From: Botryllus schlosseri
Taxonomy: Eukaryota
NCBI GenBank assembly: GCA_051294905.1
Contig: CM119385.1
Location: 3,162,001 to 3,226,000 of the forward strand
Direction of reading: 5' to 3'
Length of the DNA: 64,000 nt
Shown here: positions 1 to 33,052 of the stretch, piece by piece
How positions within the stretch are numbered: position 1 is the first letter of the stretch
How the letters are laid out: every line of letters begins with the position of its first letter
Translations under genes and position numbers: made by a program
Notes under the pieces: generated by a model
Seen by the model: the letters and a program-made list of their open reading frames with translations, nothing else
The model's database searches: none
What the model was told of the DNA's origin: nothing

Positions 1-40
1 TAGCTTGTCTAGATTACTTTTCATGTAGTACTACTTAGAC

Positions 41-1225
41 CAGGGGTTCTCAACCCGCGGCCCGCGACATCTTTCAGTAGGAACGCAATTACTACTGGCA
101 CTGTATTGTTATGGATGACCGATGTGTCACATGTGTCGAAGAACAGTTGTTGTAACGAAGCGCAGTACCTTAAAATGGTACCACGATAGTTTCTTCTGGA
201 GTTGTACTGCCTGATCGGGTAGAAAACGTTGCTAGCTAGGTTTCAAGCCCACCAATCCATGTTTCGAGGCATTGTTAAAATTGCCGAATACGTTACAGAC
301 GCATTGCTCATAATTGCTTGGAATATCGCTAAACCAAAGAATCTGTTAGAGAAGGTGTGACTTCAATAAAACTTTAACGTACTGTGCGAATATTCGCTGT
401 TTCCGGAACTTTGCAGCAAGTCCAACATCACCTGACAAATTTCGAAGCTAAATTGTCTGATTCAACAGTCACCAGAAGAGTAACAGCAAAGTCAGTCGAT
501 CTTTTATCGCATGTTCTGAAAAACGTTTCCACGTAGACTACTTTAGCCTAGCATTGGACGAATCCACCGACTGCACACACGTGGCATAGCAAATTATCCA
601 AGTGCGTTTTATCAGACTGGACATATTTCCAGAGGAAATGCAGACGGGCAAACGTGGGGAGGGGACCAGTGAAAAAACATCCACTTTACAAAGCTGACTT
701 CTGTAACTATTGGTGTAGGGCTCCAGCCATGGAAGGAAAGGAGAAGACTTGATTGGTTTGCTCAGAAATGATCCCGAACGCCTGACTTCTTCTGCTATCA
801 CTGAGAGCTCAAAGGGCTATTGGCCTCTGTAACGAAACAGTTACCGTAATTTTATACTTGCTCGCTCACGCATTGAAACAGAGAGTTCGGTTCTTTTGTG
901 GAAGGGTTTGAAGCAGGGATATCTAGAACTAGGTGTTCTAGATATCCCTGGGTTGAAGGTGCAGATACCGACTTGGCAACGTATGCAATGTACGCTCCAT
1001 GAAGGGATTTACTTGTGCCACTGGAAGTTAGATATTCTCACAAAAAACTGCAATGTTTCATAATGCATAAAAATGTACTAAATGCCCGTATAAGACTGGT
1101 AAATGGGCTATAGTAGCCTAAATTGAATAGCAGCCCGCAAATACATGGTGATAATGTTCTGCGGCCCGCAGCCTCTTTCGCTGTTAAAATGCGGCCCGTA
1201 ATACGAGGGAAGTTGAGAACCCCTG
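41..1225 (+). mobile_element. Non-autonomous hAT (Buster/Charlie/SPIN-like) element with decayed transposase remnant
   Basis: Perfect 14-bp TIRs CAGGGGTTCTCAAC (41-54) / GTTGAGAACCCCTG (1212-1225); perfect 8-bp TSD ACTTAGAC (33-40, 1226-1233); internal + strand YFSLALDESTDCTHVA*QIIQVRF (about 539-610) matches the Buster-type first catalytic Asp motif, with stops. Confidence 0.92.
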
Positions 1226-1339
1226 ACTTAGACAGTTGTGATTAAGTTGAACATCGACTGTAGTGTCTGTAGTGCTGTATTATTGTTATTTTAATTTGAT
1301 CAGGTACACGGCTTACTCATTTATACTGTATATCTATTG

Positions 1340-2194
1340 AAATTACGGCCTCGCAAGTTAGTGACGTTGTTGAAGAATGGTACGATACTCCCCCGGAAAT
1401 TGTCCATGAACTTCTCTTCAACGACTTTGATGAAAGCATGGACACCATATCTGTTCCAAATATTATTCAGCAACCAGTGGATCTTGAACCATTGCTGCGC
1501 TCATTGGAGTTCAAAGACCCACCAGAACTATCTGAAAAAGGTATTGAACTAGCTACGGGATGGATTATCAGTATGAATTCTACTAGAAATCCAGATGATA
1601 TTGTGATGAGTTACAGTAAGGTTTGCGGTGATCCAATATTATTTACAAAATCAAACGACAGGCTTTTCTCTGCCAAATTTTTATTCGAGCTCATGGAAAA
1701 TAATTGATAATGGAATGAAGCCACCTCAGCCGGAGTCATTGGTCTCTGCCAGCATTTCTGAAAGGGAGAGAGATATTTTAGAATACATGGCTGGTTTTAC
1801 TTTGAGAAAGGCAATTCGAAAATTCAATGACCAGTTAGACCGATCTTTGCTTGAATATCTTATAAATAACAGTGGCAAGCCCTTTGGCAAGTTAATCCCC
1901 CTGATGTAGCGCAAGTCTGGGGCGCTTGTATATCCAAGCTCAAAACTGCTCTTTCTTCTTAGGAGAGTCTACAGAGAGTTTACGAGGGAATGCAGCAAAT
2001 CCCCAATATTAATGAACTTTTCAATTTTGCAGGACAGAGTTGTCCAAAGTTCATACGTATTCAACTTCAGAAGCAGCATCAACAGAGCAACGTGTGTCCA
2101 TTCCAAACTAGTGATGGACTATGTCATTGGCTTATTTCTTAGAGTGTTGGGTCACTCCTTCACAAAGAAGCTAGTTAACAAGCTTCGGAAATGA
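1340..2194 (+). pseudogene. Frameshifted transposase C-terminal remnant, P-element/THAP9-like
   Basis: Joined ORF pieces give ERDILEYMAGFTLRK...LIPLM*RKSGALVYPSSKLLF...DYVIGLFLRVLGHSF, resembling the YxAG(Y/F), LxYPS and terminal LxxxxxxFLxxxxH motifs of P-element transposase C-termini; several frameshifts and stops. Confidence 0.45.
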
Positions 2195-2301
2195 AGAGAG
2201 TCAAATAAAGGAAACCAGGGTACACGTGGTGATTTGAAGGGAAAACCTTGATCTGAAAGTGTTTTAGAATGTTTGCAATTTCAAAATTGATGGCATATAA
2301 C

Positions 2302-2494
2302 CAATCTTCCCTCTAATTTTTGACGAGTCTGCGCACACTCGCCAACTCACTGCGCAGACCCTTGGACAACAGTGCGTAACGACTAAAAAAAGGTCATCAC
2401 TTTGGATTTTTTGTGCGCAACTTAGATTTTCTGTGCGCAGAGACCGTCTCAGCACTGCGCATTTGCGCACTTGTGCAGCTTAGAGGGAACATTG
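2302..2494. mobile_element. 193-bp hAT MITE
   Basis: TIRs CAATCTTCCCTCTA / TAGAGGGAACATTG (13/14 match); perfect TSD CATATAAC (2294-2301, 2495-2502); TGCGCA-rich interior. Confidence 0.9.
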
Positions 2495-3696
2495 CATATA
2501 ACTTGCAATGTAGATTTTAGTGAATCTGGACGAGACAATGGCCTGCGTACATTGTGATTTAGTTGAACACACCGCCAGTGTCTTCTCTAGTTTATAATCT
2601 GCTATATTTTTCAGATTGACATGTTCTACCCGCGCTGCTAAGGATCGACATCTCATTGCAACAAGTATGTGATCGCAGGGTTCAACCAACAAGAAACGTT
2701 ATTACAAGAATGACGGTTCAATGACGACGCGAATATTTACAAACCTCTACCACATGAAGGTGTAGGGTACAATACTATATATATCACACCAGAAGCATTG
2801 TTGACTTCTAGTCATGCAATCCTTTCATTTCTCATCTGAGCAATAAATGAGCAACTTGCGACAGTCATCATGTGTGGTATTGTATATTGACAAATTATCA
2901 AGTATATTGACGATTTATCATCCATTTGCTAGATGTTAGCCAGTTATGCAGAGCTGTCCGGGGCACAACTGGTACGAGCAGAATGGTGCATGAAGGCACC
3001 ACGGAGACCAAAGTATAAACCCGGTTAAAATGAAAGATCTCCGGGTCGCCATGACCCTTTCATATCCAGCAAATGGGTTGGGTGTCAGTGACAGTTTTCG
3101 ATTTTTCTTCATATTTTGTAATCTCCTTGCATGGTCCGCGGCGTCATGTGGCTGGTCATCTTCATCTGAAAAATAACATCATACGGCAGCATACCATGGA
3201 CAAGTGGAACAATTGATGCAACGTTGGCCTGGGTGAAATTGCTTCAGTCTCTAGCTGAACCTCAATCGTTACTTAGTAATAGCACCACTCAAATGTTAGA
3301 ACCCCACTCAAATGTTAGAACCATTCTGTATACACAGGTTTACAACATGCCGCCGAAACCCCAAGCACAAAAGTATAAAACAATCCTATTCCTCTCATAG
3401 AGTGCAGTGGTTACAGCTTTATTAACATATGGTGAAGGTTAAAAAATAATATAACCTTGATGGACAGCTTTCATGACGATCATCTATCGCGGCCACTGCG
3501 GTCATCCTTGGTCTAAAATTGATTAGTTATGCAATGATATGATGGAAAAGGAAAAGCCTGAAAAAATAATATAACCTCGATGGACATCAGGATTGATTAC
3601 AGTCAGGAATTTCCTTTTCCATGCATATCAGAATTTAGGAAATTGTATCAAATGGTCTCTAACTATCTCACCTTGTTGGGAAATGATTATGAATTA

Positions 3697-4458
3697 CACT
3701 TTCTTCTTCTTGACAATGGATTCTTCATAGATGGTAGTCCAAACATTATTAGCGCCATGCGTGGAGGAGGAACCGGCATTGGACCCTTTGATTTTCTTGA
3801 TGGACTTACGCTGAACCTGGTGTTGGAGCCCATAGTATGCCTGCGAAGCATCAGGATGCCGTGATCTATATGCTTGCATTCTCTGTTAGGTGAGAACGCA
3901 TTAGCGATCAAATTATGCCACAAGCTGTACAGTGTACAATTAACACAGACCAGATTTCCGAAACACGCTTCAAGAATATCTTGAGTAGATGACTTGAGCC
4001 ATACACGAGGCATCACTTCCAGAAATACTTCAGCCAATTTGACCAAATTGACCGACGTGAAAATGAGTCCCTCAAGAGTTAGACGAGCGATTATCCTTTT
4101 TCTCTTGCCTCTATGATGCTTGGATACGTCTTCCCTAAAACATGCAGCAAAATTGAATGAAACTGCTCACAATTCATCAAGACTTAGCTTGCTTACTTCT
4201 CAATCCATCAACGATTTCACAAAGTCCTTCTCAAGCCATGTCAAACGTTCATCTTTTTTTTATTGGACATTTATAGCCACAGTTGATGATCTCAAACCAC
4301 CTGCATAGAGTCAAAATTAATCAAAAATAAAAATAAAATGAAGAAATTTACTTGGAAAAAAGAAGTATGAATTTCGAAGTTCCTTCAGCTCCGGTGATCT
4401 TCGAGAGGCAATTTCTCACTTTCCAATTCAGAACTACTCTGGCGAGATCTACTTTCAT
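3697..4458 (-). pseudogene. Intron-containing P-element (THAP9-like) transposase pseudogene, catalytic core exons
   Basis: Removing GT-AG introns 4301-4351 and 3883-3950 gives MKVDLARVVLNWKV...GTSKFILLFSK|WFEIIN...DERLTWLEKDF...LMD*...LTLEGLIFTSVNLVKL...STQDILEACFGNL|RMQAYRSRHPDASQ. This matches the KMKV, FDxxN, DxRLxWL and SQDxLExxFGxxR motifs of P transposases; one frameshift (A-run near 4254-4261) and two stops. Confidence 0.85.
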
Positions 4459-6759: not shown

Positions 6760-8469
6760 CATCATATATCACTAACTATTATCATCATTAGTGAAACTAC
6801 AATTCTGCCGTATAAACATATCAAAATAACTTCGATAGCTCTGCTACCAGCCTGCTTATTTTCACTGGACTTGAACACGCTCCACGCGGATAAAGTAAAA
6901 AATAACTAACCAGTAGTTTTCAGTCAGCGAGATTTCGAACGAGTGTTTTTTATTTCAGCTATTGACGTTGCGTTCTGCCTAAAATTTTTCTGCCGACCGA
7001 CTCGTGAGCGCAGCTTCCTCGGATATCGCCATGTCTCTTTCGGTAATAGTTACCATATCTACTCAATGATAATTATACTTTATGAATGACGGAATCACCA
7101 GCAGTTTATGTGATCCGCTGGCAGAAAAAAAAACGGACGTATTTCTCATTAAATCACATTCATATGATCGTCATTATAGCCTCAGATATCTCATTAGCTA
7201 CGAACCAGATATCTGGACTGCTGTTTCATATAATAGCACGGACTCCATCCCTCCCACACCAATGAATTACAGCACGTGCATGTTCTCCAAAGCAGTGCTC
7301 TTCCACCTTTTCGTCGTGGTACACCCTTTTACCTTTTATTCGAAACTCGTACACCCCTGAACCCCTGTCACATAACACACTGATGCCGTAGTAAGCTTAA
7401 ACCAGGACGGTTCGACAATCAACCTTATCGCTATCCACGACCTTTTTCGATTAGATATAAAGCATATAACCTCAATGGCATCTCGACGTCGTATACTCAC
7501 GACAAATTAGCTACTGGAAACTTGGTACCACGTATTGCCCTTGCGTATAAAAGTTGTTAACTGTGCCGGAGGTTTACTATATCTATAATCCAAAATAGGG
7601 AGTTTAAATGCTAGGGACTGTTATCTGGAATACTTTTCTGTTTGGAAACATAATTTCGTTGATTCTTGGTTGTTTCATACAATACTGTCAAATATTTGTC
7701 CATTCTTTGCCCACGTGATCAGATTAACTATAGAGCTGATGTAAGTGTTGTCTTCGAAAATTTTGGGCGCATAATTAATGACGATACATCTTCTAGTTTT
7801 TATTAATCACTTTGTTGCATGTTGTTATTTTTTACCCCCCATCAAGATTGTAGGCATAGTCGAAATATGTATTGGAATCGCCCGAACGTAGCAGAATAAA
7901 CCTTCATTCGTGAAACGCACACGATTCTGACTTGGTATTTCCTTATGGGGTGCATCAATTTCCTCTGTGGCTCGCTGTGTGGCGCAGATTACACTAATAT
8001 ATTAAAAACAAAAAGATTACCCTGAATCGCACCAGGCGTGAATAAGATTTTCAAGTTTAATCAATACCTCTCTTAAAAGATATAGGAACCAAATTGTTAA
8101 CTCAAATTGCATATTGACGGCCGTCAACACACGCTAACTTAATTATGTGTAAAGAGGGCCGCATATAATTATTGTTTAACGGCTGCATGTGACCGTACCC
8201 CTGCAGGTTTCCACCTTTGACCAGTTGAAATATGTATATGAACAAGGCTGTGACGTATTGGGAATGCTAGATACTAAACAGGACTCCAGGTTTCAGGACC
8301 ACCACCTAACACAGTGTTTCTCAAACTCGACCCATTAACAATGAATGATGAACGAACGACAAGGAATTAACATTAGCATATTGCATCACAAAAGGAATGT
8401 AATTTACAAGCTGCGTACAACTGATGTGAACATTGTAATATATTTCACAACCGGTCAACATGTTCTGAG

Positions 8470-8944
8470 TAGGGCTGGCCAAAATCGAGTTCCTGAGTGA
8501 TTCGATTCTGAATCACGTATTATGCTTCGAGTCGAGTCGAGTCTTCGAGCATCACTCATTATCTCGTCATAACAAAGTGTAATATGTCAAAGTTAAAATA
8601 TGTACCACTTATGCCACCACAAAGAATATAATGCCTGTTATTCATCATATTCAAGATTTCTGACAATGTTGTGGGAGGATCATGACTTCCGAAATGTTTT
8701 TCCAGTCACAGCCGTAGCTTTGTACTATACGTTTCATATGCTGCGAAAGGCCAATCCGGGTTTCAAGGCTTCCACAGTGGAAAATAGTATCGAAACCGTA
8801 ACTCTCGTTGATAAAATAACTTGCAATGGCGAGGGGCGTAGAATTTCAGTACTCGGAAAAAATCGTCTTTTGCTACTCGATTCGAATCTTTGAAATAATT
8901 ACTCGATTCATATTCGAGTACTCGAATCATTGTGCCCAGCCCTA
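8470..8944 (+). mobile_element. hAT MITE (TAGGGCTGG TIR family), copy 1
   Basis: TIRs TAGGGCTGGCCAAAAT / ATTGTGCCCAGCCCTA; perfect TSD GTTCTGAG; subterminal TCGAGT/ACTCGA repeats; homologous along its length to 17154-17661. Confidence 0.92.
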
Positions 8945-11029
8945 GTTCTGAGGTATAACATTGCCTATTTATTGTGATAGCTAGGTATTTGTCTATTTTA
9001 ATGCGGGCCTGGTACACCCCGGTTCACCCCATCTGAATGGTACACCCTTTTATAAATTTGGTACACCCCGAGGTGTACGAAGCACCCGGTTGAAGAGCCC
9101 TGCTCTAAAGCAGTTGTCGGCAACCGTTACTGCTCCGTGGACCGATTTCGGAATGAAATCTTTTCGCGGACCGAACACAAATGTTCAACGTTGAAAATTG
9201 ATTGCACCTCGTGCACTATAATGTCAGTAAAGTGTGTTCAGTACGACAGTAACTTGTAACACATATGTATTGAATAAAGATATTAACATGATTTGCTTCC
9301 ATTTTTGCCTGTGATCTTAGCAATTATGCTAAAGCAGTGGTTCTTAACCTTTTTTCTCCATCGCCCCCATTCGAAAAATGCCTGGTTCTGGCGCCCTCTA
9401 TTCTAAGGATTGTAGTAAAAATTAATGAGTAAAGTGATCGAAGTCTGGCTGGGACTTCACTATTAGGCCACTCGACTAACTAACGGTATAATTGTATGTG
9501 CTATTTTCGGGATCAAATCCAAGTTGTTATAACAACCATCGGGTAAGGCCTACAGGCTCGTAGCATTTGGTTCTAGGTCGATGTACGCATCCCGAATTCT
9601 GCACTGCGATTGGAAATACGGGGAAGTTAATTGTATTGGTGTTTGTTTTATTTCTTCGCGCGACTACTAAATCAACTGAGAATGTGGTAGAGATCTTTAT
9701 ACCCACATTCAATTTAGTACTTCACCAACCTCTCAACTTGAACATAAATGGGGGTAACAGCACTAAGCAGAATCATCCGTTATGATACGATGAGGAAATA
9801 TTCTGACGATATACTTTGGTAGCTCTCAGATACAAGTATATTCAGATAATCATTCTGGCCAAAAATCTTCAAAACATCTTTAATGTGGGAAGGGCATCTC
9901 TCTCAAAATTTGTACAGTACAGTGCTATTTTGATATCGACACGCAGTGCGCTGCAGGATACAATACCTAGTTCAAAACATTTTGTGCAAAATAACCCGAG
10001 CTATCAGTATCAGTATCAGTTTATTAATATTTTCATCATTTCCAAACACCACAAAACTGCGATACAATGAAAAGGTGTCGAAACGACTTGGAGTAGCTAT
10101 AGCGTGACGGGAGTGTCTTATCGGGAAATGGGCAATACAAAAGTACGCCAAATTTATTCTACATGAATCAAAAAAACCAGTGCATGCATGGAAACATCGT
10201 TGGTGGATTCATTATTCAATCTGTCAATAATATAGCTAATTGCAAGTGTATTGCTATATTTTTTAACCTCTCTCAGCCCACGTAGTGGCCTACTCAGTTT
10301 TACCGCTGGAGCTGAGGGAGGTAGGCCTACTTTCTTGGAAATATTCGGGAGGGCCCGTTGGTATAATTACTTCGTTGCATGTTGTTATTTCGTGACCTCC
10401 CTTCTGTTATGTGAAAAGATATTGAAATCGCCAAAGCGTAGCAAACTAAAAAGACGCACCCGATTCCCGATTGGTATTTCTTCACTGGCAAATATTGCCT
10501 ATGGTCAATTGGACTTCGTGGTTTTCAGTCAACATAAGGGCAGTCTTTTTCGGCCAAGGTTTTCTCGCTGTCGAGCTTTTTTTCCCTTTACTTGGTTAAT
10601 TTGATCAGCAGTTGCAACCGCAGTGCCTTCTCGGAATCCCTTGTTGTCCTAAAGTTCATTTATCTTGGTGCGTCGTGGCGCGGTAATGGCTAACGCCGAA
10701 ATGCCTAGCTCTAAAAACCAATGATCTCTAAATCGCGCGGAGCGCGAGAAAAATTTGAATGAAGTTGCATAAATTTTCAAAAAAATACCCTATAATTTAA
10801 GTACATTCACAAAATTATTTTGGGCGCCCGTCGAGCTCGCCACCCAATTGGGGGGTTTGGGGTGCGGGAGTTACAGTCCTATAATATACAGCTTATTGTC
10901 TTGGTAGTTGGTTTGCGAGAAGTGTGCAGCTTGCCGAAATGGCCTACTTGTTTAGCCAAGGTTGCAGTTATTAACCATCTTTGAATTTCAACTTTCCGCT
11001 TTCTTTTTTGACATCCTTTATGGGTGGTG

Positions 11030-13211: not shown

Positions 13212-13217
13212 TTTATT
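13212..13217 (-). promoter_or_regulatory. Candidate polyadenylation signal of the DNMT3 gene
   Basis: AATAAA on the minus strand about 60 nt after the DNMT3 stop codon; position only, no transcript evidence. Confidence 0.4.
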
Positions 13218-13276: not shown

Positions 13277-15121
13277 TTAATTCCACCACAGAATCACTCC
13301 GTCCATTGATTCCGGTTGAATGCTCGCGAAGTATTCTTTCAGTGGCGCCAGAATAATCCTCACGACCGGAACAGACCACGATCTGCCGAGCAGAGCCAAA
13401 CGTTCGCGAGGCCCTAGATTGTTGACGTCGGTGTAATGTTCTGGTACCCCAAATATTTTTTCTACCTCAGTCGTCCACAAGATATCTTCCTTTCCATGAT
13501 GAACCACTGGGGCTTGCCTCGCCTGCCCTTGGTACAGACATGTAAATTTTGTTGTGATCGTATTCAACTTTTCGACTGTGGCTTTACGGCCTGGCTCTAA
13601 ACAGTTTTGTACCTTGAGACGATCGTTGGCGCCAGGTGCGATTTTACGGTTTCGCAGTCCAGGGATATTTCCCCAGAACAATCGCGGTCTAGCGGCAGCG
13701 CTAACGTATCGTGCATCTGCCATTCGGGGTTCGCATTGTAAAAATCGAGATATTCTCTGCTTCTCGATTCCTTTCATAGAAACCACGTTTTCGAACAGCC
13801 AAAAGAACGGACGCTCTCTGTACTTTCCATTGGCACCGCGTGGTGGCTCTATGGTCTTTAGTACCCGATAAAAGTCGAAGAACAAACACCCACTGCCCTC
13901 CGCGTCTATAAGCCCCTTTCTTCTAGGATTGGCCCCCGATAGGTCGTTGCAAGGACTGCCGCCCAACAGCAAATCAAATGGTCCCAGTTTGTAGATATAT
14001 TCATCGGAAAGTTTAGTTATGTCTCCAATGTGAACTACCTCTGGGTGCCTATTTTGCACCAAACGGATTGCATCTTCGTCGATCTCGGAGGCGAAGAACG
14101 ATCCAATCCCGAGGCCGAGCTGCTTGAGTGCCACCATTCCTGTGGCTATGCCGTCAAATAGAGATAAAACTCGGAGAGGTTTCCTGGAGCTGATTGGAGT
14201 TGGTTTCGGCACGTAAAATCCGGGATATTGCGAATCGTCAATGTTTTGAAACAAGGTCTGAATTTCCTCTTGCCATTCCTCACGTCTTTTAAGCAGAGAA
14301 TTATGTGTAGGCTGACAAAAGAAGCATATCCACCGCTTAGACGACACCGCCACTTGGAAATAATTCTTCTCGGTGGCACTATCAACACACATTTGGCAAT
14401 AGCACCTTCCGCAATCTGGGACATCGCAAAGCAACACCTTTCTTCCTTTACAACATACTGAGCAACAGGAATGGCATCCGTCGGAATTATATTTGAAGAA
14501 GTTCTCGTAGAACAATATTTTGTGCTCCGCACACAGCCCGCCCATGAACAGGGGATGCTTAGCAACGATATTGGTGTCCCCACAAGATAAACAGATACTT
14601 TGTAAATCAATCTGGCCCTCTTTCACTTTGGCGAAGGCTAATGCTTTAGAACCCTTCACCGAGTTTCCATTTTTAGGTCTGATGCACTTTATCGACGAGG
14701 CCGAGCTGCTGATTTCAACATCACCTGAACATAAACTGACAAATTCTTGCTGTCTGCCAACATACTCTTCGAGTGGGAACGGATCACTTGAGAGGCTGCT
14801 CTCGCCGAGAGATAAAACGGAATTGGACAGTTCGCTATTCCGAGTCCTGGGGAGATTGTTCTCAGCGAAGCTTGCTGGCCAGCGGAAATTGTCGTTGACT
14901 GCGTGGCGGTTACTCCACACTCGTTTCAACCTCTGCAAATATCGCGGGTTGAATACCGCAAGCCTAAATTCGTCTTCCAGATTAACGATATCGCAAATCA
15001 TAGACAGAATCGCTTCGAAGCTACTCTCGTTCGGCCGTCTTCCGCGTAGGATCTTATCAATAGCTTCTATAAGGCTATCCTCAAGATCGTATGGAATGTT
15101 GTCTTTCGCTATTGAGCCCAT
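13277..15121 (-). CDS. DNMT3: DNMT3-family DNA (cytosine-5) methyltransferase, single exon, ADD + catalytic domain, no PWWP (614 aa from first ATG)
   Basis: Uninterrupted ORF. ADD finger CLSC...HPLFMGGLCAEH...CSVCC...C...CGRCYCQMC...WICFFC (14315-14593). MTase motifs: I VLSLFDGIATG, II ASEID, IV GGSPCNDLS, VI LFENV, VIII RPRLFWGN, IX WTTEVEKIFG.PEHYTD, X LLGRSWSVPVV...APLKEYF. The ORF-track start at 15154 is a TTG; the first ATG is at 15121, with an in-frame TAA upstream. Confidence 0.97.
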   Translation of the reverse strand: MGSIAKDNIPYDLEDSLIEAIDKILRGRRPNESSFEAILSMICDIVNLEDEFRLAVFNPRYLQRLKRVWSNRHAVNDNFRWPASFAENNLPRTRNSELSNSVLSLGESSLSSDPFPLEEYVGRQQEFVSLCSGDVEISSSASSIKCIRPKNGNSVKGSKALAFAKVKEGQIDLQSICLSCGDTNIVAKHPLFMGGLCAEHKILFYENFFKYNSDGCHSCCSVCCKGRKVLLCDVPDCGRCYCQMCVDSATEKNYFQVAVSSKRWICFFCQPTHNSLLKRREEWQEEIQTLFQNIDDSQYPGFYVPKPTPISSRKPLRVLSLFDGIATGMVALKQLGLGIGSFFASEIDEDAIRLVQNRHPEVVHIGDITKLSDEYIYKLGPFDLLLGGSPCNDLSGANPRRKGLIDAEGSGCLFFDFYRVLKTIEPPRGANGKYRERPFFWLFENVVSMKGIEKQRISRFLQCEPRMADARYVSAAARPRLFWGNIPGLRNRKIAPGANDRLKVQNCLEPGRKATVEKLNTITTKFTCLYQGQARQAPVVHHGKEDILWTTEVEKIFGVPEHYTDVNNLGPRERLALLGRSWSVPVVRIILAPLKEYFASIQPESMDGVILWWN

Positions 15122-17153
15122 CTTTTCTACGAAGTTCCCTCGAGTAGGCGTCAATTAATTACTGCTGTAAGACGCTACTAACAAAAGCGGACGGTATTAA
15201 CCATGCGTCTAACATTGAGAACTGTCACATCCAAACTGATTTGGAGAGTCGTCTCAAATGACCTATAATCCCTATCGCAGTTGTTTAGTGTAAGTGATTA
15301 GCATCAGGGTGGGTTAATCCCGATGAAATACATGAGAAGAAGGGCATATTGCACTGCAATCAACCACACGTTAAATATACGATTATTTTGAAAGTGCGGC
15401 GGCCAACATGCCGTGTTAAAAACTAAGTTTCCTGAACACCTTGTAAAGTTGGAACCACATCCCGTGGAACATGGCGAAACTACAGGTTAAATCAATATTA
15501 ATATTCCACGCAACAATAGTACTCATTTCCGGAGTTATTAATGCTGTGTTTATGTAGATTATATTGACTGCACTTTCAATACGACAGAAATCCACAATAT
15601 GATTTCGATATTGTCAACATAACATTTAAGGAATCGACAGTAATTACGAAGTGAGTATGTGTTCAACTCATTCACTGACAACCGCAGGGAAAATCCTGCC
15701 AAATTACTGAATGCCATTTTAATCCTAATTCAAATCAAAGCACTTCTTTGCATACCACATATCATTCGCCCACTGTTATACCAACGTATGGTGGAGAAGT
15801 TAGAACGGCAAAATCGAAATTCACAATTCATCGGGGTTTCGTTCTAGTACATTGTGTCGGAAAATATTGATACTAGGATTCAATGCATATATCCTAAATC
15901 TGATCATAAGTAAGAATGGATAACACTGTACAAATATGCATATTATTAGTAGCCTATATTCAAGTTCTGCACCTCCAAGAAGCTCTGCAAATATTATTTG
16001 ATCTGATTTGATTATAAGTATATGTTTAATTGTTCATACTTAAAGGACAAGCGGGTTTAGGACATGCGACATCTTGATGTACACAACAGCATGTTATCGT
16101 CTATCTGCAGTATTACTTCCCAATGATGCAAGGAAAAAGGAAATGGTGTGTAGACGACCCGGAGCATGAATGCGGGAAAAAGCCATATCTCCAATGTAAT
16201 TATTAATCCTCGAAACAGAGAGAATAAGCATCTGTTTATTGCTGTCATCCATAGTACCGTTATCTCGCATTGAATTGTACAAGGCACGCATAGTAAGTTA
16301 TAGGTGACAATTCACAAGTAATATTGTTATATCGCTGAATCTCTAGGAATGCGAGTACGTGATCGAAAAATGATCCTTCATATTTCTACTCGGGTGACGC
16401 GTTCACGCTACATATGAAAATATGGCATTCGATGTCATTCCGGTAATTCAGAATTTCTCATATTTCTCATTTTTAATACCTATAAAATGATCTCAGGACA
16501 TACAGGATTGCTTGACTAAGCGTTATGATGCGCGGTCACGGTCATAGCATCGAGTAGCTAAAATGTGCAGAGGTGGAATAACTGCGATTTGAAGGCACGT
16601 TGGAGGTAAACAGAATATATCCTCGAAGGTAATGCAATAGAGATCGAGGCCTTCCATACATATGCATAATTGAAATGACTACAAATCGATGCGAATTGTT
16701 TGGTGAATATAATTCCGGTTTTGAGCTGGATGTCGCTCAATTGTTTGAGCGACCAAAGGCGCCCATTTAACTAGCGTTCACAAGCGCAATATCCGTCGGA
16801 TAATGTTACGAGATTATAATCGATATCGACAAACATGTTAGGAAAGCATTGCCTCAATCCTACGGAAGTTACTTTAGAAAGTAAATTTATATTGGCCGTT
16901 TGTCGTTGCGAGGTTACATGCACAGCGCATACCACTCCAGCGACAATGGAACGTGGATTCGATGAGAGACAGTAATTCCTTTTGGGACGCGCACTTTAGG
17001 GAAAACCTCGACATATCATTTGCCTCCTTAACACAGGGCAACAACAAGATGAAACTCCCGACCCCTGCAAGGTTTACGATCTCGCGACTGTGCTTGCTGG
17101 CTCATGTCTGCCAATGTATAGGCTTACGAGCAGTCACACAACTCACTCCTTGG

Positions 17154-17661
17154 TAGGGCTGGGCAAAATGGAGTACCTGAGTGAATCGATTCTGAATCAC
17201 GTATTGTGCTTCGAGTCGAGTATTCGAGTATCCATTAATATGACGCCACAACAGAACGTAATATATGAAAGTTCAACTATGTACCTTTTATGCCACCACA
17301 ACAATGTGCCTATTAGCTGTCACATTAAAGATGCAGTGGTATTTTTTCGACCATACCGATTTCATTGCACTTCTTGACATTGTTGTGGGATGATCATGAC
17401 TTTGGAAATGTGCTGTTTCCAGTAACGTTCGTATAGCTTTGTACTATGTCTCGTATGCTGCGACACGGCCAATCAAGGTTTCAGGGCTTCCTCATTGGAA
17501 AATAGTATCAAAACTATAATTCTCTCTAGTAAATTAACTTTCAGTTTCGAGAAGCGTATAATTTCAGTACTCGAAAATATCTTCTTTTACTACTCGACTC
17601 GAATCGTTAAAATTAATACTCGATTCAGATTCGAGTACTCGAATCAATGTGCCCAGCCCTA
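17154..17661 (+). mobile_element. hAT MITE (TAGGGCTGG TIR family), copy 2
   Basis: TIRs TAGGGCTGGGCAAAAT / AATGTGCCCAGCCCTA; perfect TSD CTCCTTGG. Confidence 0.92.
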
Positions 17662-20600
17662 CTCCTTGGTAATGCGAATACGACACGCTATTCGGCCGTT
17701 GTTGGATCGGTGTTGCAGCGGTGGAAAGTACCACTACGTTATGCGCTACCATGTTTTTCGCTGGTAATGTATACAGACATTTTATTGCTTCGTCAAACAA
17801 AAATGTCCAATGTCCATTTATACACTTCCATTTGTTGAACTTTGTCATTTAATTTTTATGTAGGACTACGTAGATCATTAGTGGTATTCAGAATAGACGT
17901 AGGAATTTAATTAAAAGCAATAACTTTGTGTGGTGGTATTTGCCACAAGGTTATATAAAGCAGTGCTTCCCAATCTTTGTCAGTTTGCGATCTTCTTTTC
18001 ATCCCAATTTCATTATGCGACCCACCAGACGCCCTCTCGCGACTAACATTTAGATGACTGCTCTTGGGCGCCAGTTTTATGCAGTTAGTGTGTTACAGCT
18101 GTATGGTTACGCATAGGGGGAATATTTTACCGAATTCATGATGGCAATAAATCTATGATATTGGCACTTGTATATACTATTACGAATTTTAGGAGACAGC
18201 AATATTTGAAGACAGCCGTTTAGGCGCCTATTGTCAATGGACCATTCCGCATATATATACCGAAGGTATCGATTCTTTTCGGAAGAGGTTTTCTCACTGT
18301 CGATTGTTTTGGCAGCACTTTTCGCTCGGTCACATGTTGGCCGAAACTTCATAAATCTTGGTATGTGGTGGCGAGGTAATGGCCCACCCTGGAACGCCTA
18401 TTTCTATAAATTATGCCTATTATTTTATTAGGGATATTGGTACCCATATTGTAACCAAAACATCTGACGATGTGAAATCGCGCCCGGCACGAAGAAAATT
18501 TGATAGACGTTCAATAATTCTCCAACCAAATACTCCACATCATTTACGTTTATTCATGAGATAATTGGGGCCCGTTGTCGAGCTCGATGCACCCATTGGG
18601 GGGTTGAGGTGCGGCAGTTATGGTCCTGCATGTAACAGATGATTACAGATGTGAAGGGCTAATCAAGGCTCCTCGTCATCCGATCTGCTTAAGCGGTATT
18701 CCAAAAAAGACTGGAAGTGGTCCGTGCTCCGAGTCGTCAGAGGTGGCATCACAATAAAGAATATCGACCTAATGTAAATGACCATTGTAGCAGAAAAACA
18801 CCATGAATACCACAAACAAACAACAGATGAGAAAGCGCGCATCCACTCAGCCATTCGTCTATTACAGCGGTAGACAAACCCCGGCACCCGTGCCATTTGT
18901 TGCCCATGAGGTGATTTTTAATGGCACGCCAAATGATTTGACACAAGCGACATATTGAGACCATGTTTTTGCAAAAAGTGAAACAAAAGTTCTCAAAATG
19001 TAAAACTAGTAGGCGATCCAAATTTTTTTCGTAAATCAACATAAAATAGAGTCTTTTAGGGCAGATGTTACTATCTTGAAATTTTTTCCCGCGCTTGGCG
19101 CGATTTCTTGGAACCTGATGTCTTGATTATAATGGGGAAACCAACCCTCAACAAATAAATATATATCAATATAGAAAATGTTTTTAGAAAATATTTTTTT
19201 AAACTATGCATAATGTACAGAAATGAGTCAACCGTATTAGCAGTTATGAAAGAACGTCAACCGAATATCGTATGAAACCGTTTGTATGCTTTAGTCTAGG
19301 AGCGTTCGCTGTGCAGCCTACCGGAGCGAAACTTGACCAGCGCGAAACAATTTAACGCCCACAGCTTGAGCCGCACGTATCAAATGAGACCCACCAAAGA
19401 AAATAATAATGAGCCTCGTGTCAAAATGCGTATTTGGAATCGTGTTCGTCTCTCGGAAGAAGATATTCTTTTGGTTTCGTCTGGCGTGCAAGCAATTGCA
19501 TTATATCTGGAGCAACGACAATCTTTACAGCTTTACCGTGACCTTTGCAGATAAATCTAGTGTCAGATCGGTCTCAATGTGACACCAAACCGACTTGAAT
19601 GATACAGGGGTGGGCACATTTTTCATCATCATCAGACCATATCATCGCAACAACACTGATTGGTCTGTCACTTATTGGATATGGTACCGAACACAGTGGA
19701 CTGGGAAACGACCAAATCAACCACATAAGATCGATCATTGCCCAATGCGTGCGCGACGGAAAATAAATTATGTAAATATCACGAACATATCAACGATTGA
19801 TCGGGTGCGGTAGCGACCAAAATTTATTCCCTTCGCGACTTATCAAGAATCACTGACGTGACGGATGCCGTTGCCAGCTGCAGAAAAACGGTTGTTGGCA
19901 TTACTTGCTTGGTACGTTAAATATTAATGAATTGAATGTCTGGAATTCAAGCTGGTAAAAAATTGACATTTTGGACCGCTGCACACAAAAGGTTGCCAGC
20001 CCCTGGTCCATTACGTCGAACAGAAAGGTGTTGTGAGTAGCTTGCGTTGAGGCAATTGTTTGCTGATTATAGCGACAAATCGTACTGACCTGCTGCATTT
20101 CCCGATCAACGCTCGCAAAGCCTTTGGAGGAAATCATGAATTTCAATCTCACGCATATGCAACAACGCACTGTCGAATTTCACGCTTTAATCAACATGAC
20201 TGTTGTTATGTTCTTGATCTTGTTTCAACAATAACTCAATGCGACGAGGTTGCAATAAGAAATCAGTATATTATCAGCAGTATAACTTTACTACAGGCGA
20301 CACGATCCAGAGTGCAGTTAAATGGAAGACCACGAGACAACAGAACACAGGGTATAAATACAAGCACGACACACGAGGAAATAATTATTGGCTGTAATTA
20401 CTAATCCTATAGAAAGAAAGAGCTGTACGACACTGAAACGTAAATGCACGAACATGACAACTGTGACGCAAATCTTGCTCACGAATCATTGTGAGCAGGG
20501 CAACGTGGCTTGTGGCGCTTATGGGCGCAAAATATTTTATTTTGGAGGAAGAGAATGTGTATTCGGAAATGGAATATTCGAAAAGTTGAAGACGAAAGTG

Positions 20601-24058: not shown

Positions 24059-27000
24059 CAGTGGCGTAGCAGCCACTTGGCGGTTCTGGCTCTGCGCCAG
24101 GGGCGGCAGGCTCCAAGGGGTCGGCAAAATGAGGCTGCGCAGTGTACACAGCCGGCTAAAATCAGCGTAATTGGTAGTCTAATAGCTGGCGGGAGCTAAA
24201 ATCTAATCAAACTGGTCTCGATCGAAAGCTAGTGTCGCGCTGATTCCGAAAACACGAATTAATATATTAACATGGCAATGGAACCATACTCCGAAATAGC
24301 CGTCAAGGCCAATTGACCATGATAATGAAAATTATATCGTGCGATTATTCGGAGCAATGCAGATTTTCAGATCAGCATTTAAACTGTATTTACAGAATCA
24401 GGGCAACAATAGCTTTCGATTAAGATGAGTATTGGTAAATTTGAGCGCTCGGAGGGCCTGGCCAACTATAGGATGCGTATTCAAGTGTGACAATAAGTTG
24501 GGCTTGTATCCGTAGGTTAGTGATTTATACTCTGGGTTACGATTTGATACAGCAGACCGAGATAACTGTGAAGGTAAGCCAGTCTTAGGAACTGCTTAAG
24601 TTGGTAATAATTGTCAGATTCACATATTGTGCTTAAATTTATACAAGTGTTAATTAAGACTAGAAAATGAAACGTGTCAAAGAGAGTGGAGCTTTTTTTT
24701 AGAAAGAAGAAGAAAGCAAGACAAGCAGAAATAAAAAAGCACGAGTGAGCTATGCTGAAATTTGTAACCTCTTCTGGCTCAAACGTCTCTTTAACATTAC
24801 CAGAGAACGATTCAAATGAAAATCAGGACAATAACGCTGAGCTCCAGAAAGATACTGAAAAGATCAGCTTATCTGCAGAAACGCGAGAGACAGAGTCTAC
24901 CAAGAGTAATAGGCCTACCAATGATATCAATTATACACATGTAGACCAAGGTGAAAACAACGAAGAAGCAGTTTCAGTAGTCAATAATCTGCCCAATGAT
25001 GTGGCCTGTTGGCCTGAAGTTATAGATCACCATTTGAGAGTTGAGCTAGTCAAAGCAGGGCCAGAAAAGTATCAAAACAAGGATGGGCCATTTGCTTCTT
25101 GCAGCAGAATAATTAAAGTTGGCGACAGCACTAAGGTTGAGCGAAGAAGTGTTTCTAAAGAATGGTTCTATAATATACTCAGAAACGGTGACAGAATTTT
25201 GGGAAGTTGGTTATTATATTCGAAAAAGCAATCTGGATTGTATTGTTATTGCTGTTAAGTTGTTCCACCTTACTGGCCCTGCCATATGTAGCGCAAAATG
25301 TTTCTATCATTTTTGGCATTTAAATCCATGCATATTTGAGCATGAGAATTCCGAAATTCACAAAGAATGCATGGAAAAATGGAAAGAGCTTGCAATGAGA
25401 CTACAATCGCAACAAACAATTGGCAAGAACATGTAGAAACATATGGATGGAGAGCGAAAGAAGAGGAGAGCAATTTTAGAAAGCGTTGTTGATGTCATAT
25501 TATTTTTAAGTAAACAAAACCTTCCTTTTCGAGGACATCGTGAAGATTTTGAATCCAACAACCAAGGGAATTTTTTAGAGACCGTGAAGCTTCTGGCAAA
25601 ATATAGTCCCGTACTCAGCAAACATCTTTCTGATATTTGTATTTCTAAGAAGATGACAACTACTTATATTTCTTCCACTACTCAAAATGAGCTTATTGTG
25701 CTTCTCAGTAAAAAAGTCAAAAGCATCGTTCTTGAAGAGGTGCGCGAAGCTAAATATTTCGCGATTATGTGCGACAGTACTCCGGACATATCACATACTG
25801 ATCAAATGACTCTTATAATGAGGTAGGCTATGTAACAATAAAAAACAGCGTTGCCCAACTGAAGGAATCGTTTTTGAATTTCTTTCCGTTGAACGGAAAA
25901 ACGGCAGCTGAAATTTCCCAATCTATTCTAGATGAACTTGAACTAAACAACTTAGATGTGATAATGTGTAGGGGACAAGGCTGCGACAACGCATCTACTA
26001 TGTCGGGAATTCATGCTGGAGTGTAGCAAAAATCAAAAACATAAATCCAAAAGCACTATTCGTGCCGTGTGGAAATCACACACTGAATCTTGCAGGCGTT
26101 CATGCAGTCGGATCACCGCAATTAACCGACAGATTTTTTGCTGTTTTAGAAAGATTGTATGTATTTTTTGCTGCTTCTACGCATAGATGGGATGTCCTTC
26201 TAAAGCATGCGCCAATCGCGCTGAAGCGAGTGATTGACACGCGATGGAGCGCACATCACGCCGCTGTAAAGGCCCTTCACGCAAGTTTTGATGAAATTTT
26301 GGATGCTCTTGAGGAACTAGGTAATCCAAACGAAATCTTACTACACGAGGTGACGCTCATAGGATTCTGGAAGCGATTAAGAATTTCTCTTTCTATTCCT
26401 TCTTATGTTTTTGGAAAGTAATCCTGCGAGAATCTCATGACACACAAACTTACTTGCAGCAAAAAGGACTGTTGTTGGAGCAATGCTCTAACAAGATGAA
26501 GCGTTTGTTAACTTTTTAGTGGAAGAACTAGCTCACGTGGTTGAAGGTTCTGTGGCGATCACAAAATGCAGAGAGCTCGAGATTCCAGTTGAAGATCGGA
26601 GAGTTCGCAGAAAAAGGAGAATTCCCGGCGAACAATCAGTAAATGCTGGACTCAGTGTTGTTGAAGAAGATAGACGGTGCATGTTTGAAGCTTTGGACAG
26701 ATTTAAACTTGAAGCTGAAACTAGGTTTACCGGCATACACCACTTGAATGATATGCTTAGATATTTGAATCCCCACGCGCTGCTGCAAATCGAAAGTAAC
26801 ACTTTATTCAGCAGCGCTTTTAAAAGCACTTATGACGACGAGGTGGACTTTTTGGAGTTGGCTGCGGAAATCGACAGATTTAAGAGGCTGGTGCGGAGCA
26901 GTGAAACCACGTTTGATCGTATAGTGCAACAGCGTTTGATGTTTTACGGTGGTTAGATAATGCAAAGCTACTTGATTCGACCCCATATTTATGCTTGTGT

Positions 27001-27353
27001 CGGAAACTTTATCTGAATTGCGAGTGTGAGAGGAGCTTCTCAAAGCTCAAACTAATTAAGTCTTATTTACGTTCTACCATGAATGATGATGAGCTATCAG
27101 CTCTATCCATTCTGTCTATAGAAAGAGACTACGGTAAAAAACTTGAATTTGAGGATATTATTGCTGATTTTGCTTCGGCGAAAGCCTTATTGACGTTGAG
27201 ACGGTGAGGCTGAGATGCGGCATATTATTTGTAATTATTTTTATTGACAAGATTGCTTGAATATGAATCTATGTCGAAATTTGTTGCGGTCTACTTAGGG
27301 GGAGGCATTTTAAGTGAGAGCCAGGGGCGGCAGCACATGCTGCTGCGCCAGTG
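24059..27353 (+). mobile_element. Full-length but decayed hAT element (Tip100/Zaphod, ZMYM1-like transposase)
   Basis: TIRs CAGTGGCGTAGCAGC / GCTGCTGCGCCAGTG (13/15 match); perfect TSD ACCAAAGG (24051-24058, 27354-27361); transposase pseudogene inside. Confidence 0.93.
24667..27207 (+). pseudogene. hAT transposase pseudogene (TTF-type zinc finger, DUF4371-like region, DDE core, hATC dimerisation region)
   Basis: Motifs WLLYSKK..LYCYCC, LPFRGHRE, GNFLETVKLLAKY, YISSTTQNELI, FAIMCDSTPDISH.DQ, RGQGCDNASTMSG, PCGNHTLNL, TRWSA and CERSFSKLKLIKSYLRSTM lie in several frames with stops. Confidence 0.93.
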
Positions 27354-27989: not shown

Positions 27990-29186
27990 CAGGGGTTCTC
28001 AAAGGGTGGGCCATGGCCCACTGGTGGGCCACAGAGCATTTTGAGGTGGGCCACAAAGCTATTTTGAAAATTTTAGAATTAATGTAAGTTTAGTTATATT
28101 TTATATGTTAAACGCTAGAAATATATTCGTAAACTTTTCATCCGACATGTACAAGTCGAAAACGGGAGGCACAAACGGCGGCCTATTCCACTGGCTATGA
28201 CAACCTACGGCTAACAGCAACTAAAGTAATTTCGAGTATATGATAACTGGAAGGTAATGCTGGAGTAACCAAGTATCCCGGCAGGATCATTTGTCGTATG
28301 CCGTTGAAAGGGTGTGCAATAAACTCGGAATGAAGTGTAATTAAGGTATAGATTTACTGTACTTCGGCAGGGCAGGTCGTATTATTGTACGACAAAAATA
28401 GCCATAATTGAAAATTATTAGTTACTTCGAGTGACGGTCTACTGCACCACCGCAACGAATCATAATGGATTGAGGATTTAGCGGGGCGTATTAATCTTTG
28501 GAGTCGGTTTAAAATGTCCGGCCTGGAAATCATTGAACATTATATAAGAGTCACATGAACTGATTATATCATTGGATTGAATATTCTGACATCGCAACTT
28601 CAGTTGGTTTGGTACAAGGCATACATTGTACAGCATGCATATTAAAAAACTCTTTCTCCACTTCTCTGTAGTACTAGCACCCATTACCCCATTCATTAAT
28701 GAATTGTCTGAAGCTGACCCTGAATGAATATATTATTCGCCACAATAGTGGAACTAAAACCCCAATCACACAGTGGATCCGTGGATTTGATCATTGAGTT
28801 TCGCGACGCGAATGGAGCTGCGGACGATCATAATATACACAGGAGTTTCAGCTTATGATCTACCAGGGCCGTAACTGCCGCACCCAAACCCCCAATTGAG
28901 GGAGCTCGACGGGGCCCAAGATTATTTCGTGGGTCGTTTGTTGAAGGATATTTATTCAACTCGAAAATTTTCGTAGCGCTTCGCGCGATTTCATGTCCCG
29001 AGAGGTCTAGATTTAAATATCAGCAGTAAATTAAGAGAAAATGCGCATATTTTAGATAAATAGGCATATCGGCGCCGTCGATTACCACACATTAAGCAAG
29101 ATTATGACTCTAAGATAAGAGGTGGGCCACAGCACATTTTCAAACCGGAAAATGGGCCACGGCCAAGAAAGGGCTGAGAACCCCTG
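27990..29186 (+). mobile_element. Non-autonomous Buster-type hAT element, copy 1 of the GTGGGCCA family
   Basis: TIRs CAGGGGTTCTCA / TGAGAACCCCTG; perfect TSD TTCTAAAC; homologous throughout to 44659-45854. Confidence 0.92.
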
Positions 29187-30879
29187 TTCTAAACCATAGG
29201 TGATGGGAGTAGTATGCGACGGATGCGGTCGCATCCCCTATCCAAATATCTTAGATTGTCACGAATTGACTTTTTTAGTTTCCTTACTATATTACAAAAT
29301 CAGTGACAGAAACTTGTTTAACAATATACAAGGAGCATATATTTAACGTAACGGGCATATATTTAACGTAACGGGCATATTTCTGTCAAAACTACATTCA
29401 TTGCAGTATTGAGTTATCAGATCAATGACGTTTGATTCTTACGGAGTTAACGGCACCATGACAAGCGCACGAACAGAGAATCGAAGTCTTAATTTGAATT
29501 CCAGTTTTAGCATAATATTATTATGATCAAATGTCCATTATGTCATTGATTGGCATCTTCCTCCAGATTAGCCTGGGACATGCCTGGTTTGCATTTCTGT
29601 TCCTGGGAAATGTTTTCCCCTCAACTATATCCTGGTTTCTGTATATTATGAATACATTACTGTCCAGTGTCCACTGTGACATCAATCGGCATTGGGCAAT
29701 CTTCCTCCAGATTAGCCTGGAACACCCATGGCTGGCTTTTCCGCTCTGGCGCTCTTTAGAAACATTTTCCATATATGTAGATAGTAGATCCTGGTTTCAG
29801 CATATTATGACCGTTTCGCTGAACGCTATGTCGTAATGTCATCCAAGTTGGATGGTTGACTTTCCGCTCTTAGAAATATTTTCATCTTGTTTCGATCCCA
29901 GATTTCGTTATCTGAATCAAATACGCCATCTTCTCGATGCGGCAAAGTCCATATTTTCGGCTTCTTCCACGTTTCAGAGTTGCTATCCAACATAAAAGAT
30001 CATTTGCCCAATTTTCCGCCTCTTCTTTTTCTATAGCATAAAATACTCATTTGAACTGTTATGAAATTCTAATGATTTATACTGTGCTTGAAATTGAAAC
30101 CTAATACCTTACTCATTCGGAATCAAACCACTCAGAATTTGCCCAGCTTGTTATTATGCTGAACGTATGTCAGTAGATTACGTTAATTATCCTACATTTT
30201 CTTGCAAAGCAATAACTTGAAAAATCCAAAGTAATTCAAATCATTGACTAAATAAATAACTTATCAACTTTTATATGCCATCGCCAAGAACGACACGACA
30301 AGCTACTAGGATTACCTAGTATATCCCTAGCTACCAGCTAGAGTGCTAGACGCTACTGCAGGTCCGCAGCTAGACGCAGTATACTTGTCATGGTCACTGG
30401 GTTGAAACAAAACATTGAGGTCATAGGTTAACATAGGTTCGGTTTATCAGCAACTTTTATCAGTGCAATACATCACAAAAATTGCGATACAATGAAAAGA
30501 TAGAAAGGTATCGAAACGACTTGGATAGTATTTGAAATCAGACACTCACCTTGGCCTTGGCGATGTAAAGATAAGGATGTGCAGATTGCACACTGCATGG
30601 AAAGTAGAAAGACTACACGGCTGATAGACGATACCACGAGGTAATCCCGGCACAGAATAAAATATAAGGCACATTTTAAAATCATCTCTCGTACATCGAA
30701 AAAGCAATCTAATATCACCAAGCCCCGAACTACTGCCATAGCTAAAGGCTTTGCTACTGCGATCTCCGGCAATGTAAATTGACGTCATCGCTAGATACAG
30801 ATGCATTGTGGGTAGTACCCTAAGTGATGTCATAGTGATAGCGACAGTTGAATCATAGATCACTAAGTTGATTCAGAAT

Positions 30880-31620
30880 AACGCGAAACAATAACTTCAT
30901 ATTGTTAATTTATTCGCTAAAAGCTTTTCGACTAACTCTCATCAGTAGCGAACGTTAGTGATGGGGTGAATCAAATTCGAAATGTAAGAACTATTTTGTC
31001 TGTATGACGTAATAATAACAAAAACAAACAACTAGTAGACGGGCTAGATACGGTAGTAACGGTACAAAACAAACGTTACGAGTACATATTCGGTTATAAA
31101 TAACCGAAAACACAACACATAACATTAATGAAATATTCCAAGAGTGTAGAGGCGTTCCTTCTGGCGACAGAGAATCGGCTTTCGTAGCTTTATGATCGTA
31201 GATTCCAGGACCTTTAAATGAAAAAGAGAACGGCCACGAGCAAGTATAGAAAATTGACTGTCGTTGTAATGATCAGCACAATCTGGATGGGATAAGAGAT
31301 GCTGTCCAATAGCCGAATTACAAGCAGTAACTTGATCATAATCACGCAGTGTGTCAACAGACTGCGATGAAGGAGTTGGAGAAACATTATTTATTCTAAT
31401 TTGCCGTGGGACATGCTGGCGAATTCTTTGCTGCAAGCGCTGAGACGTGCGACCTACATACCGACTGTCACATCGGCACGTGTATTCATATATTATATTG
31501 CTTTGATTTGTCGCAGGTAGCACATCCTTTTGTGTTGCAGGCATCAGAGATTTCGTCGTGAAGATTATCTGAGGTTCTACTTGTGAAAAACAATGGCTCA
31601 CTGACGATTTAATTTGTTTT
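30880..31620 (-). mobile_element. 5'-truncated Penelope-like retroelement (GIY-YIG endonuclease end plus 3' region)
   Basis: ORF 31125-31601: KDVLP...SNIIYEYTCRCDSRYVGRTSQRLQQRIRQH...SAIGQHL...FSILAR...LKVLESTII...PILCRQKE, the PLE GIY-YIG with its CCHH residues; a hammerhead motif lies downstream. Confidence 0.9.
30913..30952 (-). ncRNA. Minimal type I hammerhead ribozyme motif
   Basis: Minus strand TTCGCTA-CTGATGA-GAGTTAGTC-GAAA-AGCTTT-TAGCGAA: 7-bp helix I, intact CUGAUGA/GAAA core, 2-bp helix II, palindromic AAGCTT helix III; located in the PLE 3' region, where such ribozymes are known to occur. Confidence 0.8.
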
Positions 31621-32980: not shown

Positions 32981-33052
32981 GCAAAAATCACTATGAAGTA
33001 GTGTAACCACTAGATAGCTAGTAACGATTTTGAATTGTGTGCAGGTAATCCA

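Follow-up and report, generated by a model that had tools for sequence, protein, structure and literature searches.

The locus studied here raises the question of how an ascidian came to have a DNMT3-type DNA methyltransferase gene with neither introns nor a PWWP domain. The stretch analysed (the window) comprises 64,000 nucleotides of Botryllus schlosseri (assembly GCA_051294905.1, contig CM119385.1, positions 3,162,001 to 3,226,000, forward strand), and positions given below count from its first letter. The initial annotation took the gene for a retroposed copy that had lost PWWP targeting, was kept by selection and could be an independent origin of a specialised, DNMT3C-like enzyme among otherwise decayed elements. 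We find that it is a genuine, conserved, intronless member of a PWWP-less lineage of ascidian DNMT3s (lineage B below). It is probably the functional lineage-B DNMT3 of this stolidobranch ascidian, and all 15 coding introns were probably lost at once, most likely by reverse transcription.

The gene is an uninterrupted open reading frame (ORF) of 614 codons on the minus strand, from an ATG at 15121 to a TAA at 13279-13277; the longest frame begins at an alternative TTG (15154), with an in-frame TAA directly 5' of that TTG. The single exon with an ADD domain, all methyltransferase (MTase) motifs and no stop was confirmed by the ORF listing, Pfam, phmmer and an alignment of 36 DNMT3 sequences. 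According to Pfam, the protein matches ADD_DNMT3 (PF17980; residues 163-212, 49.2 bits, cut-off 26), the ADD PHD finger (PF21255; residues 220-269, 42.1 bits, cut-off 27) and DNA_methylase (residues 317-455, 65 bits). A phmmer search against PDB aligns residues 166-600 without a break with human and mouse DNMT3A (E 3e-136), with DNMT3B and DNMT3C close behind. Motifs I, IV (PCN), VI (ENV), VIII, the target recognition domain and motif X are all intact in the 36-sequence alignment, and the protein retains all 60 columns in which at least 30 other DNMT3s are invariant. The parts of the gene are as follows.

13277..15121, minus strand: single-exon coding sequence of a lineage-B (PWWP-less) ascidian DNMT3, 614 codons plus TAA (ORF listing, Pfam, PDB phmmer, tree)
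14888..15100, minus strand: N-terminal four-helix domain, residues ~8-78, at the place of the PWWP in other DNMT3s (AlphaFold, BLASTP)
14642..14887, minus strand: disordered, fast-evolving linker, residues ~79-160 (predicted local distance difference test, pLDDT; 29% identity to the closest relative, P0001)
14240..14641, minus strand: ADD domain (GATA-like plus PHD finger), residues ~161-294 (Pfam; PDB ADD chains, E ~1e-28)
13322..14200, minus strand: C5 cytosine methyltransferase domain, residues ~308-600 (PDB MTase-domain chains, E ~1e-96; motifs; Foldseek)
13212..13217, minus strand: candidate polyadenylation signal AATAAA, ~60 nt past the stop codon, low confidence (sequence reading)

The absence of a PWWP, as first described, is borne out: Pfam gives no PWWP match (PF00855) in the window protein at E<=0.1 and none at E<=1 for the N-terminus, the N-terminus is modelled as all-helical, and the 64 kb contain no PWWP-like segment. 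Motif integrity, together with the purifying selection described below, suggests that the protein is an active methyltransferase. By homology, its ADD domain would read the histone H3 tail and gate the catalytic domain, which would methylate CpG de novo.

We searched for homologues in 5.8 billion proteins and, exhaustively with HMMER, in 1.84 billion representatives. The top matches among the 5.8 billion proteins are all ascidian, and vertebrate DNMT3A comes next at ~48% identity. The closest relative is a protein of 618 aa (P0001) from the Logan contig L001, which is 65% identical over 99% of the query and 85% identical in the MTase domain. Other close relatives are the DNMT3C-like protein of Styela clava (isoform X2, P0002; isoform X1, XP_039266746.1, P0121, found via its cluster) and a Logan fragment (P0003), and further relatives are proteins of Ciona intestinalis (P0004), Phallusia mammillata (P0005) and Clavelina lepadiformis (P0006). 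No PWWP match at E<=1 was obtained in any of the ascidian relatives scanned, five in number (P0001 and the proteins of S. clava, Ciona, Phallusia and Clavelina).

The exhaustive HMMER search also found a second kind of ascidian DNMT3, H2ZR26 of Ciona savignyi (P0146), which has PWWP, ADD and MTase domains and is 44% identical to the window protein. With H2ZR26 as the query, PWWP-bearing orthologues were found in C. intestinalis (P0272) and S. clava (P0273). Judged by their sequences, ascidians carry two DNMT3 lineages, A with the PWWP and B without it. Each has 100% bootstrap support in neighbour-joining (NJ) trees, where the window protein lies inside lineage B, among tunicate proteins and outside the vertebrate DNMT3 clade. 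The stolidobranch subclade of lineage B has 99% support and the pairing of the window protein with P0001 94-97%; this pair is sister to S. clava plus P0003. The sister relation of lineages A and B has a bootstrap of 44% only. Lineage A has the ADD plus MTase core and intron positions in common with lineage B; it differs in having the PWWP, in being only ~39-44% identical to the window protein and in forming a clade of its own. More than one DNMT3 gene had been noted earlier in C. savignyi (two dnmt3 genes; PMC6976628) and in ascidian or sea urchin genomes (PMC2656531). We found no study of the function of the ascidian PWWP-less DNMT3 in the literature searched.

Membership of lineage B can also be read from single residues. 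At 11 out of 11 signature positions the window protein has the residue that is fixed in the other five lineage-B proteins but occurs in none of 29 other DNMT3s. One of these is the His that replaces Cys as the fourth ligand of the GATA-like finger, which is the case in six of six lineage-B proteins and none of 29 others. The S. clava protein shares these signature residues, the order of helical N-terminus, linker, ADD and MTase, and the lack of a PWWP, with 74% identity over ADD plus MTase; it differs in gene structure (16 coding blocks and two N-terminal isoforms, against a single exon of X1 type with a shorter linker in the window). The Ciona, Phallusia and Clavelina proteins likewise have ADD and MTase, no PWWP and the Cys-to-His change. 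They are less similar (62-63% identity), their lysine-rich N-termini show no detectable likeness to the four-helix domain, and the Clavelina gene has multiple exons. The absence of the PWWP thus appears, from these comparisons, to be an old trait, ancestral to lineage B and common to all ascidians examined.

Beside the ascidian lineage B (60% bootstrap) branch two ~577-aa proteins from ENA/JGI environmental assemblies, P0147 (contigs L006 and L007) and P0154, whose C-terminal MTase is 61-65% identical to that of the window protein. Their cysteine-rich N-terminal halves have no Pfam match to ADD or PWWP. They may represent one more DNMT3 form of tunicate-like type, sampled from plankton; the contig start common to two assemblies suggests that the P0147-type sequence is a transcript.

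We mapped the lineage-B gene structure by tblastn in two species, S. clava and Clavelina, and took the lineage-A structure from Ciona. In S. clava, the lineage-B gene is split by 15 coding introns into 16 coding blocks over 9.6 kb; the Clavelina gene has at least 10 to 12 coding blocks (at least nine introns), and the Ciona lineage-A gene 16. The ORF in the window is continuous over all 15 coding-intron positions of its S. clava orthologue and contains none of the introns, so the description of the gene as intronless stands. Boundaries common to the S. clava and Clavelina lineage-B genes fall at window residues ~339, ~409-414, 491 and 555; those common to S. clava lineage B and Ciona lineage A fall at ~302, ~405-409, 491 and 555. 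Since lineages A and B have intron positions in common, lineage B would have arisen by duplication at the DNA level, long before the intron loss. As lineage B also bears introns elsewhere, the loss of the PWWP, which would be ancestral to lineage B, predates any retroposition and is unrelated to it. The proposal that retroposition removed the PWWP is therefore not supported, because the PWWP-less lineage is ascidian-wide and intron-bearing in S. clava and Clavelina; nor is this locus an independent origin of a specialised enzyme, as lineage B is older than the intron loss. By the structures mapped, only the complete loss of introns appears special to the lineage of the window gene.

The simplest explanation for the loss of 15 out of 15 introns, we infer, is a single reverse-transcription event. 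The N-terminus of the window protein is homologous to exon 1 of the S. clava isoform X1, so the copy is full-length and collinear with an X1-type mRNA. A spliced mRNA of this type, encoding the isoform with the helical domain, would have been reverse-transcribed and would have lost all 15 introns at once. The resulting cDNA might have entered the genome as a retrogene and displaced its parent later on, or might have recombined with the original locus.

The sequence divergence shows how the gene has evolved since. Between the window gene and L001, 0.66 of the fourfold-degenerate sites differ (0.75 is expected at saturation), whereas codon positions 1 and 2 differ at 0.23 of sites overall and at 0.12 in the MTase domain. 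By the Nei-Gojobori method (NG86), the non-synonymous rate (dN) amounts to 0.25 over the whole gene and to 0.10 within the MTase domain; the synonymous rate (dS) is past the range of the method. These counts stand in place of the ratio omega (dN/dS); the NG86 proportion of synonymous differences is above the saturation limit, and the maximum-likelihood (ML) values from Biopython are unstable across blocks. Together with the 60 retained columns, they bear out the earlier suggestion that the gene is kept by selection, and the purifying selection is clear from the substitution pattern. When the window gene is compared with the intron-bearing orthologue of S. clava in a Tajima relative-rate test, the counts of unique changes are 26 and 28 (p 0.79), i.e. 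there is no acceleration. The unchanged rate and the signature residues fit orthologous replacement better than a redundant, relaxed retrocopy.

Several observations weigh against a single reverse-transcribed copy that replaced its parent. A homopolymer scan of the 2.5 kb downstream of the ORF found no run of seven or more A, and neither the repeat finder nor flank-versus-flank blastn found a convincing target-site duplication around it; a direct reading of 900 nt downstream and 1200 nt upstream likewise showed neither mark of retroposition. Without a poly(A) remnant or target-site duplication, the wholesale intron loss is the sole ground for retroposition, although the age of the event, as indicated by the saturated synonymous sites, could have erased both marks. 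When the flanks of the S. clava and Clavelina genes were compared with the masked window by tblastx, only hAT-transposase-like matches were obtained (a control comparison of S. clava with Clavelina came out empty as well). L001, a coding sequence with short flanks, is a candidate mRNA only. With saturated synonymous sites, omega is bounded rather than measured, and the Biopython ML dS of 0.22 for the MTase block conflicts with the fourfold count; we take it as an optimiser artefact. That the gene is the sole lineage-B copy, and that lineage A is present in the source genome, are presumed by extrapolation from S. clava and Ciona.

The alternative that survives best, although we consider it unlikely, is the model of the initial annotation, in which the gene is an additional retrocopy, retained and possibly neofunctionalised (e.g. 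for germ-line transposon silencing) beside an intron-bearing lineage-B parent in the same genome. The sister relation of window plus P0001 to S. clava plus P0003 is as compatible with an old pair of paralogues as with species divergence; transposons abound at the locus, where no conserved neighbour genes are recognisable, and an open reverse transcriptase/RNase H ORF in the window shows a source of reverse transcriptase in the genome. An extra copy is harder to reconcile with the lack of acceleration relative to the intron-bearing orthologue and with the full set of lineage-B signature residues. A second stolidobranch lineage-B sequence type did not turn up from the same source, which is a weak negative, and a ratio of observed to expected CpG (CpG o/e) of ~1.0-1.3 over the transposon-rich window leaves no footprint of germline transposon methylation.

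It is very improbable that a larger spliced gene, with PWWP exons upstream, ends in this ORF as its last exon. In the interval from the upstream in-frame stop to the conserved N-terminal residues there are several AG dinucleotides, so a splice acceptor is possible, but tblastn with three PWWP-bearing DNMT3s found nothing resembling a PWWP anywhere in the window, the 49 kb upstream included; this was one of the cases that the initial annotation had named as fatal to its view. A tblastn search with the S. clava proteins of both lineages, the Ciona lineage-A protein and a mammalian DNMT3A likewise found no second DNMT3-like or PWWP-coding segment in the 64 kb. Moreover, the N-terminus can be aligned with P0001 from about residue 8 on, the P0001 contig L001 carries an in-frame stop codon directly 5' of its ATG, the homologous N-terminus of S. 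clava X1 is a first coding exon, and no lineage-B protein has a PWWP.

Another such case, a recent processed pseudogene with disabling mutations still to come, would account for an intronless gene among transposon remnants, but we give it hardly any credence: near-saturated fourfold sites (0.66 versus 0.75), an MTase domain still 85% identical to that of the nearest relative and the kept signature residues exclude it, and a 614-codon frame of such age with 60 of 60 invariant columns kept would not be expected without selection. Just as little credence goes to a DNMT captured and carried by a transposable element: some retrotransposons do encode cytosine methyltransferases, and the gene is flanked by diverged direct repeats (8469-8944 paired with 17153-17661, 10547-10880 paired with 18276-18627), but their spacings differ, one of them is a ~510-bp unit with its own terminal inverted repeats, the nearest reverse transcriptase ORF is 44 kb off on the other strand, and the protein belongs to the host lineage-B clade like any other member.

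If the gene is the functional lineage-B DNMT3, its targeting would not involve a PWWP reader of H3K36 methylation; it would depend on the ADD domain and possibly on the stolidobranch-specific four-helix domain. The AlphaFold model of the window protein (mean pLDDT 80.7) consists of the four-helix N-terminal domain, the linker, the ADD and the MTase. The catalytic domain superposes on DNMT3A, DNMT3B and DNMT3C with a Foldseek template-modelling (TM) score of 0.94 and a root-mean-square deviation (rmsd) of ~2 A, and the ADD-MTase model superposes on the H3-bound DNMT3A-DNMT3L structure 4u7t (target-normalised TM 0.92, rmsd 2.5-2.9 A). We note that the same model misfits 4u7p, the complex without H3 (rmsd 15 A), which may reflect only a bias of the predictor.

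The N-terminal helices (residues 11-26, 35-46, 50-56 and 59-77) are modelled at a pLDDT of ~90, and the domain modelled alone is again all-helical (pLDDT 80.5). The idea of a cryptic PWWP was rejected on this account, since the PWWP fold is a beta-barrel. Homology to exon 1 of S. clava X1 covers the first 72 residues (BLASTP E 3e-6, residues 35-99 of P0121), and the match of the N-terminal region to P0001 is stronger (E 2e-27). By sequence comparison the domain is detectable only in stolidobranch lineage-B proteins; Pfam gives a sub-threshold match only, and neither a profile search nor Foldseek found a credible relative in PDB (best E 0.44). The linker is modelled as disordered (residues 76-147, pLDDT ~30), is only 29% identical to that of P0001 and is ~165 residues shorter than that of S. 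clava X1, whose linker exons cover few window residues. S. clava has two annotated lineage-B isoforms, X1 (800 aa) with the four-helix domain and X2 (615 aa) without it (locus L003, 10001-19560; the region lies around 5.22 Mb of OZ123514.1); the single-exon window gene can encode the X1-type form only. A bolder reading, which we regard as quite doubtful, is that ascidians evolved a PWWP-less active DNMT3 independently of rodents, with the stolidobranch four-helix module serving as a novel targeting device away from H3K36-marked gene bodies (e.g. to repeats or developmental loci) and the helical isoform hard-wired by retroposition.

The comparison with DNMT3C, drawn at the outset, holds in part. 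Like rodent DNMT3C, the window protein is PWWP-less, contains an ADD and is catalytically intact, in a family with PWWP-bearing paralogues (PMC5607212), and its catalytic domain is structurally equivalent (8tci_A, TM 0.94). It is not orthologous, it is equally close to DNMT3A/3B and 3C, and the mode of origin differs as well: Dnmt3c arose in muroids by tandem duplication of Dnmt3b and retained its introns, so it is not a retrogene (PMC5607212). The likeness is thus architectural and possibly functional, and neither by descent nor by mechanism of origin. DNMT3L also has an ADD and lacks a PWWP, but its alignment stops at window residue ~502 (E ~1e-45), as compared to 600 for DNMT3A. A DNMT3L-like inactive cofactor was rejected, as the window protein keeps every catalytic motif.

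The surroundings are rich in transposons, as described in the initial annotation, but not all of these are decayed. At 59456-62698 (plus strand) lies an open ORF of 1080 aa of non-LTR (long terminal repeat) retrotransposon type, in which a reverse transcriptase domain (E 1e-37) and an RNase H domain (E 1e-17) are recognised; it is a potential reverse-transcriptase source in the genome. Two hAT-like transposase remnants (24752-27129 and 33035-34310, both plus strand) are each broken into several short ORFs; they were recognised by a DUF4371 match, a hAT dimerisation-domain match and tblastx likeness to a hAT-like segment beside the S. clava DNMT3 (L003, ~1150-2830). A unit of ~510 bp at 17153-17662 with 18-nt terminal inverted repeats resembles a miniature inverted-repeat transposable element (MITE) and has a 76%-identical copy at 8469-8944, across the DNMT3 gene; a second diverged pair astride the gene is found at 10547-10880 and 18276-18627. 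Both pairs are dispersed repeats, not LTRs.

Other dispersed pairs in the window are 54057-54634 with 57003-57581 (89% identity, 579 bp) and 28230-29191 with 44934-45859 (74% identity, ~990 bp), and there are many more window-wide. A tandem array at 50373-50488 has a period of 50 (2.2 copies, 95% matches; a period of 23 is also readable). A 158-aa ORF at 31125-31601 (minus strand) has a sub-threshold match to the GIY-YIG nuclease (E 7.5e-4, 20.2 bits, cut-off 22.6) and is possibly the remnant of a GIY-YIG-bearing element. Rfam has no match in the window.

The ORF, its flanks and the window as a whole all have a CpG o/e of ~1.07, and the 4-kb bins range from 0.95 to 1.28 except for 1-4000 (0.74), which may be the edge of a methylated gene body. 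With a CpG o/e of ~1, the transposon-rich DNA at this locus is without the footprint of germline methylation. This speaks weakly against transposon-directed germline methylation, as young insertions would not yet be depleted, and it lends no support to the role in transposon defence that the initial annotation had suggested. Tunicate methylation has been described as a mosaic, gene-body pattern, with which the CpG picture of the window agrees.

Ascidians form the vertebrates' sister group. By the present comparisons they retain two old DNMT3 lineages, one with an H3K36-reading PWWP and one without it, and the PWWP-less one appears catalytically intact and is conserved. This makes ascidians a natural system in which to ask what a PWWP-less de novo methyltransferase does under mosaic gene-body methylation. 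In the window gene, a chromatin enzyme that looks essential has shed all 15 coding introns at an unchanged rate; as a clear case of this kind, it should be useful for dating and understanding wholesale intron loss mediated by reverse transcription in tunicates.

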